A stretch of DNA of 63,426 bases, the filler included, from Choristocarpus tenellus KU-1152 (taxonomy: Eukaryota > Protista > Phaeophyceae), in the NCBI GenBank assembly GCA_964200185.2. It is 11 parts of 11 records of this genome, joined end to end, with 100 filler letters (N's around TTAATTAATTAA, not from the genome) between each part and the next. Parts side by side here need not be neighbours in the genome. Positions count along the whole stretch, not along the records: positions 23,497 to 33,539 come from CAXNAD020003185.1; 10 more parts are not named here. One strand, written 5' to 3'. The position numbers and the translations under genes are program-made. Below the pieces are notes generated by a model. The model did not search any database and was not told the DNA's origin. It saw only the letters and a list, made by a program, of their open reading frames with translations. This document shows, piece by piece, positions 22,781 through 33,539 of this stretch (its first letter is position 1; each line of letters opens with the position of its first letter).

Positions 22781-24828
22781 AAGTCATTGATCAGATTGTA
22801 TGTTTGCAATGTAAATGCCTCCTTTAAAAAGCACGAAAATTATTATTTTTTTTAGTATATATATACATATTATATACATATATGTATATACACACAGGTG
22901 TATGTGTACATCAATATTCGTCTGATTCGTTCCAACGGAGCAAACCAACACCTCTTCCGACGATGAGGAGTGCCAAGGGACTGGGATGTCTTTTCCAATA
23001 TTCTACAACAACAACAACAACAATAACAACAATAACAACAAAAACAAAAAATGTAGAAAAAAAAATGTGGTTCCTAGAATGTAAAAATCACGCCCGTGTG
23101 TCTTTTTTTTTAATATCCCCTCTCGTTCCCCGATAAACTTCAACACAAGTGAAACTGTTTCGCTTAGGAATAAAAGGCAGACAGAAACAACGTACGAGAA
23201 GAGAGAAAAAAACGTTTTGGTCGCCTTCCTTCAACATGGGTGTACATTATATGGAATGTCAGGAATACTACACCTGTGGTGCATACGTACGTAGTGTGTG
23301 CATCAGCTAAATGTACGGGCTTTGGGGGGGGTTACAGGTTGTGTGTGTTTTTTTTTGTCATGCGCACAGTAGTTTTTTTTTTTTGTTTTTTTTTCTNNNN
23401 NNNNNNNNNNNNNNNNNNNNNNNNNNNNNNNNNNNNNNNNTTAATTAATTAANNNNNNNNNNNNNNNNNNNNNNNNNNNNNNNNNNNNNNNNNNNNTTTT
23501 TAAGACCGTTTTCGCAAAACAACCATCCTCGTAGTCCCGCTCCATCCCCAATTTTGAAAATCCTCTGTTATCTACAGCAACACAAACATGATACACAAAT
23601 AAATGCCAATCAGAACATAGGTAAACGGGTATGTAACAATGATAATCACAATCCTATTATTTGGGCAAAAACTATTCATGTTTCATCTGAAGTTATCCCA
23701 CAAGACAAACGATGAGTGGGCAAGGTTGTGACAATTGTATTGCTATTGGAAACTAACCGGGCAGAAGAATTTTCAATGGTGGCAATCTGCCAAGCACAAC
23801 TCTTTTGTGGGGTCTTTCTTGGATCAATGAAGAAAAATGATCAGTGTATAGAGTCGCTGTATGTTCCCACCAATGAAATGACTGCAGTGTAGAAAACTCC
23901 TACTTTACTATGTTAATGCAAGCAAGTACATGAATATCCAGGCTATACCCAACCTGGAATATAATCGACTTATTAGAGCTCTACATCTTGTATTCAAGTC
24001 CTTCAGTGGTTGTTGAGTACGCCTCTCGAAATGCAATCATAAAAAACCCGGTCTAGTTATCAATCCAGCCAAAATAATTCAATAAATAACCTACCATTAG
24101 CTTGCTGGGGGAGGACAAAGATAGGGTTAAAAATGTAGCATCCAGAGACAGAGTGCATTCTGAATGGCATTGAAGAAGAAAAGTGTATCATCTACAAAAG
24201 GGCAATATTCATACCCACCACAAAAACAAGAGATCAAACAGAAGTAAGACCGACTAACCCAAAGGTCATGTAGTATGATTGCTCTGTACCGATCACCAGC
24301 GTACTGCCCGAATGCAGATTGAATACTTAAAAACGACAATTACGCTAACCCTGAAACAAAAATAAGTCCCACTTTAGAGTTCATAGTAACAGTTGAAGAT
24401 CGAATGGCAAAGGCCTAGTATGAGCTGCTTATTAGAGACAGGTATATCAAGGACACAGAATGAGCAGTGTCAAGCATGACTTATCTTGTTTATTCTGCAA
24501 CAACAATATTGGATTGGGAACCATTTCTTTCATCTTGGATTTATGGTCATGCCATGTTTACCGGGCAGCCTTGATCTTGTTATTTCCCCCCACCTCCCAA
24601 CAAACCCAACAAACTTAAAACAAGATGAAATCTCAATCCCCAAACCAATTGTTTCCCATCTCATACTAAAGGCAGCAAACATACTCCACTCTTATTCCAT
24701 GTGCACCAAGGAACTTAACTTATCAAGGAACTTGAAACTGAGGATTTTCATGTCAGAAGAGAGCTAACATACATAAATACTGTACACGCACATATACACA
24801 AAAGGCACGCACACATCAAACACATCAG

Positions 24829-27800
24829 CTATCTTCGCCGCTGCGGCGGATACCGCCTTGCCCCATGACCTCCATTGGGGGGTGAGGCCTTCAGAACTGC
24901 TTGCATCTCCTCAACTGAACTCGGTACAGGAATCTGATACGTTGGATTGTCACTGGCGATGGTTCGCCACCTACTAGTACACACAACAGAGGGCAAGGTG
25001 GGACAAGATATACAGTGGTGACATGGGCACAATGATGAGAAATTTGCAGCGCACAAGCAAAGACAAGCACCAGGCAATGGTGAGTTTGGGGTGCTTTCTC
25101 TATCATAAGGACGTTGGACTGGAGAGCAGGGGCTACATGGTGATTGTTTCAGGATCAGACAAAACAACGGCATCTCCGAGTTAGAGTATCTTCTATTCAC
25201 CTATTGTGTATTCAGGTTAGCCAATAATACGCATACTGTAATGAATACAGATGATGATAGGCACAAAATCAACTCAACCAAAATTCTCACTTCTCGATAT
25301 TCTTGTAGCCTCCTACACTCTAACCACCACCATTGTTTGCCTACCTCACTTTCCTGGTCACATTACATACACAACTTTGAAGTACGTATCATAATCAGAG
25401 CCCACATGACCAAATCGGATTAGGACAGCAATGCGATAAATCAGAAATGTCCACCAATGAGCGACTTGCACTGTAGGATCACCCAAGAAAGAAGTCAGTA
25501 CTCCCAACTACTTTGCACCAACACGTTTCAGATGACTACTTGTACGAGAGGGAGACTTGGACCGCCACTTCAGTCACATACAGGTAACCATGGACGCCAA
25601 TGCACCACTAAAGCACACCTATCGCTGATGCCTGGCGCAGATAGAATGCTCTCAAGACCAATGACATCCCCCAGAGCAGAATGGGCATTGACCATCCCCA
25701 CACCAAAGAGGTGCTTGTAAACAGCTGGTATTGACATCGAACACGTTGTCAGTAGATCCACACCCACACCACAGGAACAGGTTTGGGCACAAAAATAATT
25801 TGGGGAAATTTGGAAGGAAGTGGGAGAGGAGGGAGTCAGCCAAGACTAAGACTTTGATCTCGTTGAGATCATACAACTTTTGCTTGTACCTTTCAATCAT
25901 TTTCACCTGCACTGTTACTGCTTCCTGGTCGGGTTTCTTTGCAACTGATGAACAAAATAGCATACAAACTGTGATAGAACCAACACAACTGGAAAGTGCT
26001 AAAATGAAAACTGTAACTATCTAGGCCCCAAAGGTTTCACACTCAAAACCAATCTTTAACCTTGTGTTCCCCAACACAACAGATCTTGATTCAATCCCAC
26101 TCGTGCTGTACACCCACAACCCCTATTTTACCAGATGATCTATGGGCCGGCATTTGACTTCCTCTCTCCCTTCCCCCTTGGCCATTTCCAATCAGATATC
26201 CTCACCCTCCAGCTTGAATTCTTCAGGACGACATGGCCTTGACCAATCACTGGGATTCTGTCGCCACATGTTCGAGTTCCTCAAGATCAGAAGAGTGTCA
26301 ACAAAACACACTATGCCTGTCTGACCCATGGCAAACCTGACATTGCAGTGGAAAATGTGTATGAGGGGATTGGAGTAGGGTCGCAACGAGATTGAAGAGG
26401 GTATTGTCCCACCACAATAGTTGTAGCCAAGGACAAATCTAGGAATCAGCGCGGAAGTGATCATATGAGTGGGTGACATCCCCAACCCTCTGAATATTGA
26501 TAGGCCAGTAAGCGAATCAAACTCATCGACAAGTAGTCCCTGAAAAGGGTGGCACAAAGGTTATCACCCCCTCTCCTACTTGTTCACCGGCAATGAGTAT
26601 CAACAAGACAAAACAACCTCTTGCCTGTCAAATTATGAGACACAGACAGGGAAGAAGTAGATCTGGCTAGATGCCACGATTGCTTAGCCCATGTAGGTGG
26701 AACTCACATGGTATTATCATCTCCAACATCAATGTAGGTAAAACACAGAGCACACTGCATCCTGTACTCTGTAGTGGGAGTTATGTATTAGTAGATGCAT
26801 AAATGAATGACAACTCAGGAAACAAATCAACTCTCTTAAACTATTTCCAACCTCAAAAGTCTGTACAACAATTGGCCTGATGGGATCGATCGAAATTTAT
26901 GATATTTCCTCCAAATGATGAGTGATAACGAAAATATTAGGGATACCTTAGGGTAGAGTGTAGGACAAAGGCACCCTATCGACTCAGGGTGACAAGCAAA
27001 GTATATGATTGGGAAAAGCTGATAGTTTTCGTGCCATGCCGCCTTAAAACCCTTGATTAATAATCTTGCAACTAACATGAGTATGATATCAGCAACATAT
27101 TATCCAGGTTAGCAGAAGCCCATATCATATCGCACAGGGTACTCTTACGCAAAGCAAACCTCTTTAGTCCCTGATCTGAATGTATCTACCTCACCATACC
27201 CCCCAAACCACACATCTACACTTCATCCTCCTCCTGACCCCAAAATTCCTTTCCCTTCGAGGTTGACACACCTCCCAAAGTCCGCACGTTGGAGCTCCTC
27301 TTTCATGAAAGAGTGGTCAAATCGTGCATTATGCGCCAATAGGACAATTCCTCCCATGAAGTCTCTCTCCCCCTGACCTCCATCCCCATCCCTGTCCCTT
27401 CCTCCTCTTCCTGTGCCCAGTCCGCTCAGCCAGTCAGTAAACTGTGGCCACACTTCTCGGAAGGGTTGTGCATTGTTAGCAACCAATAGGTCGGTGGTGA
27501 TTCCAGTAAGTGCTGCAATGCGCAATAAGGACAAAGGAAGGGGAGGGGAGGGGAGGGGAGGGCACCGGGGCATGGGAGTTGTTCACATGCAAGGTCTTCA
27601 GGTTTAACAATAACTTGCTCTGCATTTACCTTCTCCTGCTGCACATGCAGTCTTGCCAAATTCTCGCTTTGAAAGGGAGGGAATAAGATTGAAAAAAAAA
27701 TCGTTCAATAGACATCTTACTGCTGCCGACAACTAGCACAGATGAATCTAATATTCACAGAGTTCCCCCCCTGGTCTACCCAACCTAACCCCATCCCCAT

Positions 27801-30800
27801 CCTGACATATCTTATCCTTAATGGACTTGCAAGTCACAGGACACAGCAGTCTACTCCAGTTTTGAGGCAGAGCACAACACGTAAGTGTGTTCAAGCATTA
27901 CTCAGAAACAAAGTCTTAGACCGTTTAAAAACAACTCAAACATTATAATGAAACCACATCATGCCCGCCTGCAGTCAGGTTCGAAAAAGCACCCTGACAG
28001 GAGAAAATGGGGCATAGGAACGAACTTCTTGATAAGAAAAAATGAGTTTTTTTTTGGATGGATTGGTCAATGGTATTGAAAGTTGGGACGGGGGCAGGGG
28101 GGGCGGGCAATATGATCCCTCACACTGTATCATAGGAGGTATTGTAGCACCCTCTGGGTCAACCATGCAGGAGAACCGGTCCTTGGGGTCCTCACTCCCC
28201 ATAACCTTCAGCCAAGCAGGACACAGACAACCCAAGTGCAAAGGAAAAGCACAACAGCAAAGAAGCAAGGACAGCAAATGGATGAGTTATTGACACCTGT
28301 GCTCTGCAATACAAAGATTCATGATGAGAAAGGAAAGGGTATGCGAGGTGAACCTCAACTTCAAGCCATTCTGTTGCAGTGTGTGGGGGTCCAACAACAC
28401 TCTTTAAGTTGAACAATTACATCGCCTCTTTTTCATCACCACAACCCTCCCTCCTCCAAAATCCAGGCGTTGCTGAACACCCCTGATCTCCTACATCATT
28501 ATTACCTCAAATAACACTCCATCAACCCCATCCTTACCACTGCATGATGAATGCATCACTCCATCACCCCCTCTACACAAAAAAACATTCACCTTAGCGG
28601 CTATCTGTATCACCCTGTTACTCTTGGCAGCAATCCCAGTCGTCTCCAAGTCAAAAATAACAACAGTGTGGTCCTCTTTGATCAGGTCCACCCCCAGCAT
28701 GAATGACACACCAATAGGGGTAGAGGCACCATCACCATCACCATCACGCTCCCCACTTATCCCCCTAGAATCTCTTGAAGCCCCGATCAACACTCCCTCA
28801 TCCACAGGCAGTGATCGGGTCACGGTACTCACGGCCCCTGATCGCCGCCCTTCATCCCCACCCACTCCCACTCCACCAGCTACTATCTCTTCATTAAGTT
28901 CGTGTTCGCCCTTTCTTCCCTCAAGTTCTGGCCCTCCCCCTCCCCCTCCCCCTGCCAAGGTCTTTTCTGGTACGGGTTTAATTGACTTGGATTTGGTCGC
29001 AGTGGGCGGCCTCATGAGGAAAAAGAGGACAGGCAGGAGGGACAGAATGGGGGCAAGATCCAACACATCAGAATGTGCACCTCCTCAAAACAAAAAATAT
29101 AATATCCCAGCAACAGATTATTTCTACCTGCTCCTTTGGGCTGTCTGTGGAAGGACTGGCACAATGCAGTGCGTAAGAATAGCTCTTATGCTTCAGGTGT
29201 GAGTAGTGACATGCAAACAATAAGAGTGGATTGAGGGGAGATTGGCATGATTGGCAGCTGCTGTGTATGTCTATTGCAGGATGACACAGCCAAGAGGTAT
29301 GGCAAAGGGATCAGGCTTGGCAGATAAACAACGTCATAATTTTCAATTCCAGTCTTTGCTTACAAACGTAATATCACCCCAACTTTGAGTCTAAACTCCT
29401 CACTACCGGCTCAGGGCAGGTCTTAGAGTAGTTGTATATATTTTTTTGCATTCTGGTTATTAATAAAAAATATGAATACTGTGCTAGCTTTGAACAATAA
29501 CACCACCATATGATGCTACTTTCCCATATGGATAGTAAAAGGTCTTGGACGAATGCAACTAACATGCAAACTCTTACCCCATCTGCATTCCGAAACACTG
29601 GTCAAAAAATGTTTTCTTAGAGAAGGGGACAAGGGAAGGGGACAAGGTTGGATTGATCACAAGACAATATGGTCACACATTTATCTCTCTGCATGTGCAC
29701 ACACACTAATGTGTTGTTAGGAGTGAAGAACAGGGGAGTGATTGCAGTGACAAAACAAAATAATAAAATGAAAAAATACAAAAGTCACGGACAAGATATG
29801 TCCTCTTTGTAAAAAAAAAAAAACTGGTTCGACCAGCCATGACCAGGGCTCTTCTAGAGAGGGGTAATCTTCTATCGTGGTGACAGCTGCCCCAGACCCA
29901 CCAAAGAAATACACTCAACCCAAAGTGAGTCATTACCACCTACCTTCCAGCTTGGAATTTCTTTAACCTTTTTCATGCTGGTTGATACCTCCCCTCTCCA
30001 TTTCCCACCCACCTACCTATTCCTGCCAATCTACCTCCCCTCTGTATCACATAGTGCAAGCATGTAGAGAGCCTTACATCTCCACCTAGAGTGTAATACG
30101 TATATATAATCACTCATTGCCTTGCCAGTCCCATCACATATTTCCAACCTCAAAATTTCAGGAAGCCTAAAGGCAGTCACACTTTCACTATGGAAAAGTG
30201 TCTTACACACTCCAACACAGAACCCTTGTGATGAATTGGAGATGGAATGGAAAGATTATGACCAGGTATTCTGGAGGCTAGGGCTAGACCAAAAGAGAAG
30301 GCAACTAACCCTGTGTGACAATCCATCCCATTTGTCCAAAATGCTGCAGAGGAGTCCATACAATACTCTCCCAGAGGGAACATAAAACGACTCCACCATC
30401 CACCCTCCACCCCAACCCATCCACTCAACCCCCTCCATGTATGCCCACCTCTTGGTGACCTCCAAGATAGCATCTGTCGCCCCAAGGGCTACCAAGGGCT
30501 CAAATCCTTCTACCAGTTGCCCAGCCTTTCCACACACACTGAGAAGGAAGGCAAGGCTATCCCTAGCTGTGCTTCCTCCATTGTTGCCCCCCTGCATTAC
30601 CTCTTCTCCAGCCTCCATCCCTTTCTCCACTCCACCCCCAACCCCTGTCCTTGCTACTGCTGCTGCTCCGCTAGGGTGGGTAGGCAACAGATGCAAGTTG
30701 TCCACAAGACGCCTCGCCAGATGGTATGCCTCGGCGGCCAGATCTGATTGAAGCGTCAGGTCTGCCACCTTAAAGCTGGCATGTTATTGTTGTGGGAGGT

Positions 30801-33313
30801 ACGATAGACCTTGGTTTGGACATCAAAGGGGCTTGGGTAGGGGGGATTGTGTATTTCACAAGGTTTACTTATATTCGCAGGACTTGACGTGAATGATTGT
30901 ACAGCATTTGGTGGAAATCACAGCCCAAGACTGACATTGAGCAATACAAAGTCAGGACCAAAGCACGACCCACTCACCATACCACACTGCACTGCCATGC
31001 AGGTTCTTGTTACATTTCAGTAGAGCATAAGAATGCACAAGTTATCCCAATCAATAGGCATGCAAAAATAAACGTGAACATGGCACAGCGCTGCTGCTGT
31101 ACTGGCACAGAACCTGAACACTCCTCAACAACGAAAGCAACCTGGAGATCCATGCAATCACAAGCATATACACATACAACATGCAGATATGCCAGCAACA
31201 GCAATCACACCTGGCATCAAGATATCCCTTTTGTCGAACACCCAACACCTCGCCTGGGCCCCTCAGGGCCAGGTCCCTCTCCGCGAGTAGAAAGCCATCC
31301 CTGGTATTTCTTACAGCTTTCAGTCTCTCACTAGCGTCCTCCTTCAAGTTCTCCCCATATAGGAGAATGCAATGGGACCGGGGCAAAGGAGGGGGAGAAT
31401 CTACCTCCTCATTTTCAGTCTGGCAATTAGCTTTGGTCTTAGCCTTAACCTTGGTCTTAGCCTTAACCTTGGTCTTGGACTGTACAAAAGAGGGAAACAG
31501 GACAAGAAGTACAAGAGAGAGGGGATGGGGTGGGACGGGGGGGAAGAGTGAAGTGAAAAGACAGTAGGGAATGGGTATGTTCTTGGCAATGGAAAGCAGT
31601 TAAAAGATTATGCTGGGTGTTGTTGTAGTAAGGAGGATAACCCTTGTTACCTTTTCCATACCCAGCAATCCAACAATTATTTTTCTCTAATCTACCACAT
31701 CTAGAGAACCCAAAAGTCTATTCCTATCACTTCCTAGATGTTTCTAACCAAGCTGTACCAACATACGTCAAAAAGTGCCCCATAGCGCTGGTATTTCCCA
31801 AGAGAAAATACACATGTACATACATACATTCATAAAAAAACAGACCTCCAGCTTCAACCCTAAAAAAAAGAGCATTTATACATTACCTTCTGGCACCTGC
31901 TACCCAACTTGATACAGCACATAAATCAAATCAACATAGCTACACTTACAGGAGGGAATCAACCAAATAAGGCAGACATACGGACAAAGGCCCAAGCACA
32001 CGAACAACACAAAGAGGACAGATTTTATGAAATCAACGCACAAATCAGGAATCAACATAATTATGAAATCAACACACAAATCAGGAATCAACAAACACCA
32101 CACCTTGACTTCCTTCCCTTGAACCCCACCCTCATCCTTCCTAACATGCCCTCCCCCCGTTCGACCAAGACGGCCCCTGAGTTGGTGCAGTTGACTGAGG
32201 CCAAACATCTCAGCATTTTCCACAACACACACACCTGCCCGCGGAACATCGACGCCAACCTAAGCAAGAGCAACAAGTAACGAAGTCAGTTGGAGGGCAG
32301 GGGTGGGTTCTTTGGGGGGGAAGGGGCGAAGGGAACTGAAGCAGAGCCACGCCTGCAGACCGTAGTCTGTCACGTAGTTACAGAACAGGCATGACTTTAG
32401 GAAAACCTGACCTACATCAATTTACAGTTCACTTTGGAGAAAATTGGCACAGACAAGGCCAGTGATTCATTTTGTTTTCAATATTAAGATGCCTGCAGTA
32501 AGGTAAAGGCCAAAGTTGGCAACTGAAAAACAACATGTTCTACACCAATCTCCACAAAGGAAAAAATACAACCTGTTTGGGTTCACCAGAATTTTCTACG
32601 AGAATGGCGCAACTTTATTCAAACTGATTCAAATTAATTCAAATTAAATATGACGCAGTAGATACTGAAGAGAAAAGACCCGATCGTCATAACTTCAACC
32701 ATGATGTACTCAGAGCACACTGCCTATGCAAGCACAGCCTACCGGAATCTGGGTCAGTTTGAGTTGCATAGTACAATAAACACAGTTGATGCAATTAAAA
32801 CTACACTTTGTGATCCTCAGTCCAGAGCACAACCCTATTCCCAACACTGCCGTATATATAGTACATGACCCCATTGACAAGGGGGAAAAACTATCCACAT
32901 CAAAGGTTTTGCATACTCAAGTGTGAAATTAAAAAAAATTACAGCACATCGTAACCCAGAGTGTTATCCAATACTTGGGAGGCGTTCCCACATCCAGTAT
33001 GAGAAAAAAGAGGAGAATCGAAGGTGAACTTCAAGGTATTAAAAAAAATCAATATAAAAAATCAAACCCAGAATACAAAAGACTCAATACCTCAACCACC
33101 CAAAAGAATGGAACTTTAGATGTCCAACCTCCTATTGTCCTCCCGAAAACTCCTCTACATCTATTGAATTGAAATCATGCTCTTCAACAGATATCTACCT
33201 CTATGATGCTAGTGGCCACAAGAATCCTTCCTTCCCCCTCTGGAGCTTTGGAGAAGTCAGCTAATGTGCGATTCTTTTCCTCTGAAGTCATTTTTCCATG
33301 TAAAAGAGACACA
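24829..33313 (-). CDS. recG: RecG-family SF2 DNA helicase (C-terminal half) fused to a DEDDh/DnaQ-like 3'-5' exonuclease; 10 exons visible, 5'-truncated by gap
   Basis: Exons 33313-33199, 32259-32104, 31479-31211, 30775-30449, 29010-28593, 28205-28124, 27512-27272, 26336-26206, 25724-25619 and 24970-24829; all joins are GT-AG with matching phases. RecG motifs: [44 protein letters not shown] motif [25 protein letters not shown]. Exonuclease motifs: [26 protein letters not shown]. Confidence 0.9.
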
Positions 33314-33520
33314 CTGCAGGCAGACACCAAGAAGATCACATAGCGCATTTTGATATCACATCTCATGACCAGACCAAGAGCGACTTGGAGTGCAGTCTCA
33401 AAGAGAATTAATTGACACCACACTGTGGATAAATTGTTGCCCTTTAGCCCTTCCCCAGAGTGTCTCTAAAGGGACAAAGGTAATGGAAAAGAAGTGGGGA
33501 AAGCAGGATGGATAGCTCAC

Positions 33521-33539
33521 GGGTCAAAGTATTTGGGGG
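33521..33539. mobile_element. MITE family A terminus running into gap (within a recG intron)
   Basis: GGGTCAAAGTATTTGGGGG matches the family A TIR. Confidence 0.6.

Follow-up and report, generated by a model that had tools for sequence, protein, structure and literature searches.

A RecG helicase joined to a DPD1/TREX-like exonuclease in the brown alga Choristocarpus tenellus and other ochrophyte algae

Does the brown alga Choristocarpus tenellus encode a RecG branch-migration helicase and a DEDDh exonuclease in one protein, and what would such a protein do? The question arose from a first-pass annotation of a 63,426-nucleotide stretch of C. tenellus DNA (the window), which proposed from the sequence alone that ten exons on the minus strand, at positions 24829-33313, join the two domains. 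Positions 23497-33539 of the window match contig CAXNAD020003185.1 letter for letter, and the single annotated gene on this contig encodes CAM9422580.1 (P0404; 727 amino acids), an "unnamed protein product." We found that the RecG-exonuclease fusion is real, spliced, and expressed as one gene, because RNA-like joints connect its two halves in a public run and because relatives encode the same region in a single frame.

One spliced gene across ten exons

All introns in the ten-exon chain begin with GT and end with AG, the exon phases match, and one stop-free frame runs from RecG motifs IV to VI and the TRG hairpin into a complete DEDDh exonuclease. All 10 exons were 100% identical to CAM9422580.1 over the aligned parts. 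When single exons of the Choristocarpus model were searched against Pfam profiles (database proteins were used for the whole-domain work), the order was Helicase_C in exons 1 and 2, RecG_dom3_C in exon 3, and RNase_T in exons 5 and 7.

Three public runs from one study contain the locus. In one of them, X1, it is covered without a break, and the assembly may derive from this run. Another, X3, whose sample type is not on record, was read as RNA from its depth pattern: contig depth, a crude measure, was about 130 to 410 in the exon-holding bins versus 0 to 54 in the purely intronic bins. In the 6 kb that was compared with X3, covering introns 1 to 6, the joints skipped 939, 624, 435, 1438, 387, and 611 nucleotides, which are exactly the predicted introns, all with GT..AG ends.

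The RecG half begins with an internal exon (exon 1, 33199-33313) that holds the motif IV region from HGKM to ILVATSIIE (Helicase_C, E value of 2e-5), and its 3' splice is supported by the RNA joint of intron 1. Exon 2 (32104-32259), bounded by the joints of 939 and 624 nucleotides, carries motifs V and VI (VGVDVP ... QLRGRLGR) within Helicase_C. Exon 3 (31211-31479) opens with a short K/T/V/A repeat, followed by the TRG helical hairpin and loop (RecG_dom3_C, E value of 4e-5), and is also flanked by RNA joints. Exon 4 (30449-30775), between the joints of 435 and 1438 nucleotides, holds the final RecG helix (FKVADL...) and the first half of a glycine-rich linker. After intron 4 (29011-30448; 1438 nucleotides), exon 5 (28593-29010) supplies the remaining linker and the ExoI motif (DLETTG ... 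RVIQIAAK) within RNase_T, as placed by alignment and RNA joints. Exonuclease strands 2 and 3 lie in exon 6 (28124-28205; joints of 387 and 611 nucleotides), and LTGIT and the ExoII motif AHNARFD lie in exon 7 (27272-27512; RNase_T). The last three exons have predicted splices: exon 8 (26206-26336) encodes the FVDTL...W region, exon 9 (25619-25724) encodes the ExoIII motif HSALGD with the general-base histidine and the last aspartate, and exon 10 (24829-24970) encodes the closing helix (WR.IA) and the C-terminal tail to the stop. Identity to the Scytosiphon orthologue was 92% in exon 2, 56% in exon 4 (27 amino acids), 49% in exons 7 and 8, 68% in exon 9, and 56% in exon 10 (32 amino acids). Exon 6 was 63% identical to another relative (L001), with shared intron positions.

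The junction between 30449 and 29010 joins the two halves, and the first-pass annotation had pointed to it as the place to look for spanning reads. In X3 this joint had a depth of 422, versus 54 for the unspliced contig; it lies on one junction contig whose short side is 26 (plus 4 ambiguous) letters, just below the 31-letter bridging rule of the tool. Intron 4 has no counterpart in Scytosiphon promiscuus, where 463 stop-free codons reach from the last helix of RecG through ExoI, or in L001, where the same region is a single 355-codon exon. Thus two adjacent genes, with RecG running to a stop at 30256 and the exonuclease starting from the ATG at 29014, are very improbable and in effect ruled out: the rare GAG acceptor of intron 4 does overlap that ATG, the intron has the highest unspliced depth, and read-through into it would add a 64-residue tail, but the joint has the exact length and GT..AG ends at that depth, the two relatives have no intron here, and intronless fused homologs exist. 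Of the six introns compared, intron 4 was retained most often, at about 11% by crude contig depth in X3. Its retention would yield a RecG-only protein ending in the 64-residue tail, a form that is at most a minor retained-intron isoform.

The ten-exon model held wherever it could be compared, at introns 1 to 6, and fitted X3 better than CAM9422580.1 did. The public protein differs by an extra exon and an early acceptor at 29900-30012 and 29011-29081 and by a shorter exon 2/3 junction, and it bypasses the GAG acceptor with 69 added residues. We rejected it as the true structure: the 69 residues within intron 4 and the shorter junction conflict with the X3 joints. CAM9422580.1 nevertheless already encodes the fusion. 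The public model of the Scytosiphon gene (L264 17067-18455) cuts out four in-frame stretches of 69, 81, 273, and 54 nucleotides, which are probably false introns within one open frame.

The 5' part of the Choristocarpus gene, comprising the wedge, the motif I to III domain, and the targeting peptide, lies off the contig, and a loose end at 33314 in X3 indicates one more exon upstream. The scans for Rfam families and repeats gave no Rfam match and no notable repeat; an 18-nucleotide coding tandem repeat (KTKVKA, 2.4 copies) at 31433-31476 in exon 3 and a 36-nucleotide duplication at the opening of intron 2 (32025-32093) are both ordinary.

The helicase and nuclease domains

The RecG half was then judged from the database proteins as well as from the exons. 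Pfam profiles recognized superfamily 2 motifs IV to VI and the TRG hairpin in the Choristocarpus protein, and the N-terminal wedge and motif I to III domain were found in the Scytosiphon orthologue and other homologs. The Scytosiphon orthologue is closer to RecG than to Mfd (600 bits for NF008164 versus 285 bits for mfd). Among NCBIfam models, NF008164 fitted four fused proteins best; the fusions score below its curated cut-off. Motif II reads DEEQ in most fusions versus DEQH in bacterial RecG. The motor of the fusion has intact motifs, from which branch-migration activity is predicted. Bacterial RecG proteins of the NF008164 subfamily (Alphaproteobacteria) have the wedge, motor, and TRG motif in common with the fusions, but they are about 690 to 705 amino acids long and have no nuclease.

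The exonuclease domain was weak in exons 5 and 7 when each was searched alone (RNase_T, E value of 0.02), while the public protein matched RNase_T with an E value of 1.4e-12 (48.9 bits versus a cut-off of 24). The motifs named by the first-pass annotation, DLETTG, AHNARFD, and HSALGD, are all present with no stop between them, and the five catalytic residues (D, E, D, H, D) are intact, with ExoI D-x-E, the ExoII aspartate, and ExoIII H-x4-D placed on a DnaQ-like fold. All five, including the ExoIII histidine and aspartate, are conserved in each of the 15 complete aligned rows.

The nuclease domain was modeled with a mean predicted local distance difference test (pLDDT) score of 89.8, and the top Foldseek match of the model was TREX1. 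In a wide structure search, TREX-like proteins had Z scores of 20 to 21 versus 18 for E. coli epsilon. The leading ESM Atlas clusters had template modeling (TM) scores of 0.73 to 0.75 and comprised a DPD1 cluster (0.73) and two exonuclease clusters without a name, of which one is streptophyte; bacterial clusters scored 0.64 to 0.67. The curated DnaQ cut-offs were missed (51.5 versus 71.5 bits for TIGR00573; 45 versus 222.7 for TIGR01406), and in the nuclease tree the fused domains formed their own clade apart from the sampled bacterial domains. The domain is best called DPD1/TREX-like, a likeness taken from the predicted fold and not from a DPD1 sequence. The label "proofreading-type" given in the first-pass annotation is misleading, because the closest structures, TREX1 and DPD1, degrade DNA. 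Seed-plant DPD1 (At5g26940) and animal TREX1 have the same fold and five catalytic residues and are the best structural matches, but they are stand-alone enzymes, and the fusion nuclease shares about 20% sequence identity with TREX1. The DnaQ-DinG protein of Bacillota (PDB 9ii8; Z score of 19) likewise combines a DEDDh nuclease with a superfamily 2 helicase, but its helicase belongs to another family, its nuclease is N-terminal, and it is bacterial.

Between the two domains, the distance from the TRG motif to ExoI varied from 108 to 406 residues among the fusions. The linker is unconstrained in both length and sequence, and its pLDDT below 50 in a homolog model predicts disorder.

Distribution and origin of the fusion

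Homologs were gathered by searches from exon 3 and from homologs already fetched. The same domain order was found in about 17 further database proteins, and almost every one has the five catalytic residues. They are the partial Chrysoparadoxa australica protein CAM9788511.1, the complete Scytosiphon protein CAM9697670.1 (1497 amino acids), and about 15 others encoded in assemblies of metagenomes or runs. The metagenome contigs that we inspected are eukaryotic by their neighbors (ORC2, EML, and SOUL; proteasome subunits; OTU, U-box, and cellulose synthase), and their fusion proteins would be ochrophyte as read from the tree. All the complete ochrophyte-type RecG proteins retrieved were fused except P0408 (803 amino acids, possibly incomplete), in which the ExoI motif was not found. 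An ESM Atlas cluster of 1050 amino acids carries the label Actinomycetota; probably the eukaryotic query itself belongs to this cluster, which would then have mislabeled members.

No fused relative was found in bacteria or viruses, a weak negative: the exonuclease-motif loci listed, at least 240, were all generic (24 to 44% identity) and had no RecG in their flanks. The exonuclease search from Chrysoparadoxa found DEDDh-domain proteins of bacteria alone, most of them PolC/DnaQ-like. Nor was a green-algal locus among the matches listed when metagenome, genome, and viral contigs were scanned for motifs.

The architecture is, however, known from green algae. In Micromonas, Ostreococcus, Volvox, and Cymbomonas, a DPD1-like exonuclease is fused to RecG (Sloan et al., Plant Cell 2024; PMC12292046/PMC11275761), as restated in a 2025 review (PMC12079397). 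These proteins likewise hold RecG and a DPD1/TREX-like DEDDh nuclease in one chain and are presumed to be organellar; the comparison is by description and not by sequence. In the stramenopile fusion the nuclease is C-terminal; for the green-algal proteins the paper leaves the order of domains unstated. A chlorophyte cluster in the ESM Atlas (1511 amino acids; DEAD, Helicase_C, RNase_T 98%) scored 0.97 against an ochrophyte-type fusion. The first-pass annotation had taken the architecture to be undescribed and lineage-specific, and had named an already widespread and described architecture as grounds for withdrawal. That is largely what was found, in other ochrophytes and in green algae alike, and the novelty falls while the fusion itself stands. 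Our literature search, which covered few subscription papers, found no mention of a RecG-exonuclease fusion in stramenopiles. What is new is mainly the fusion in a second, distant algal supergroup; the architecture had been noted but never characterized.

Separate phylogenies of the two domains, proposed in the first-pass annotation, each placed the fused proteins in a single clade, with broadly congruent substructure, which suggests that the two domains were fused once, before brown algae parted from the metagenomic lineages. The RecG tree, computed with IQ-TREE from 37 proteins, groups the fusions in one clade (support 100/98) whose sister group is Alphaproteobacteria (98/96). This tree had no plant or green-algal rows and no outgroup root, its bacterial members had been chosen among our own search hits, and some near-redundant sequences were removed. 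Its references include recG genes on cyanobacterial and Rhodococcus plasmids (L254, L255, and L261). The NCBIfam assignment (NF008164, Alphaproteobacteria) agrees with the tree, and together they suggest a mitochondrial or alphaproteobacterial source for RecG. A cyanobacterial origin of the RecG half was rejected (fusions plus cyanobacteria as a clade; approximately unbiased test, P of ~1e-68), with only two plasmid-borne cyanobacterial RecG proteins sampled.

Some relatives (P0395/P0507, P0397, and P0398; L252 5048-7261 and L253 5115-7328; 737 to 751 amino acids) have lost the motor. They retain the RecG wedge, the linker, and the DEDDh domain with all catalytic residues, while the helicase is gone (residues ~345 to 860 of P0271 are unaligned). 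Because they nest within the fused clade, the loss is derived. Such wedge-nuclease proteins are possibly branch-targeted exonucleases.

A joint reading of these data, which we put forward tentatively, is that the fusion is an old enzyme derived from an alphaproteobacterium (mitochondrial), that the ancestors of both ochrophytes and green algae already had it or that it passed from one group to the other, and that the DPD1 of seed plants is the nuclease set free from it; otherwise, ochrophytes would have made the fusion independently from a different RecG. Within this reading, the motor-less offshoots would represent a new type of branch-targeted exonuclease.

Possible roles of the fused protein

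With its wedge on the DNA branch point, RecG uses its ATP-driven motor to reverse stalled forks and to unwind D-loops, R-loops, and flaps. Nucleases of the DEDDh/TREX/DPD1 type take nucleotides off free 3' ends using two Mg2+ ions. On balance we favor the view that the locus is the 3' half of a gene for a nuclear-encoded, organelle-imported RecG-DPD1/TREX-like single chain, conserved across ochrophyte algae, which unwinds and then trims the freed 3' strand. The motor would free a 3' single strand, either an invading one or a flap from fork fusion, and the tethered nuclease would trim it before it could re-invade and so protect mitochondrial and/or plastid DNA from ectopic recombination and over-replication as well.

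In plants, RECG carries out fork reversal and branch migration in both organelles and represses short-repeat and ectopic recombination (PMC6963530, PMC6981420, and PMC4358946). Land-plant RECG/RECG1 (Arabidopsis At2g01440 and Physcomitrium) is likewise a nuclear-encoded RecG with an N-terminal extension and a role in organellar recombination surveillance, but unlike the fusion it has no nuclease domain. E. coli cells without RecG, or without ExoI/ExoVII, over-replicate the terminus, where colliding forks can leave 3' flaps (PMC13220808). Because both losses give terminus over-replication, the two activities bear on one problem.

The first 50 residues of the homologs hold 6 to 10 arginines or lysines and 0 to 3 aspartates or glutamates, many with a hydrophobic stretch first. 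These extensions resemble targeting peptides and make an organellar role likely, as the first-pass annotation had supposed; the coupling of unwinding to trimming that it also proposed stays an inference. Several points weigh against our view. The first 50 residues of the Scytosiphon model hold no clean targeting peptide, and the Choristocarpus N terminus is off the contig, with targeting read from homologs. With a linker this long and flexible, the homolog model (pTM, the predicted TM score, of 0.59) shows no structural hint that substrate is handed from one domain to the other, and according to the 2025 review the function of the fusion is still to be explored (PMC12079397).

The same linker could mean that the shared chain serves import and nucleoid recruitment while the domains act independently, with the nuclease cleaning ends or primers or helping the organellar polymerase. 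Viridiplantae have a like nuclease fused to MutS1 or standing alone, and land-plant RECG functions without one; however, the fusion is present in all complete ochrophyte-type RecG proteins retrieved but P0408, and the partners of the nuclease elsewhere are recombination-surveillance proteins too, and we consider this reading unlikely. We give still less weight to a fused organellar protein for bulk, programmed destruction of organelle DNA (in gametes, uniparental inheritance, or phosphate recycling), as for seed-plant DPD1, with RecG binding or opening the DNA. The structural closeness to DPD1 and TREX1, the role of stand-alone DPD1 (PMC12079397), and the motor-less paralogs that kept the nuclease point that way, but coverage of the transcript is good in the single RNA-like run, the fusion is also kept in gene-dense contigs of unicellular algae, and a bulk nuclease on the same chain as a motor for genome maintenance would have to be tightly controlled.

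The locus corrects a public gene model and adds no new kind of system. How brown algae and other ochrophytes maintain their organelle DNA has hardly been studied, and the fusion provides a gene that can be tested in brown-algal models. The fusion also bears on the origin of DPD1, a controller of plastid inheritance in plants.

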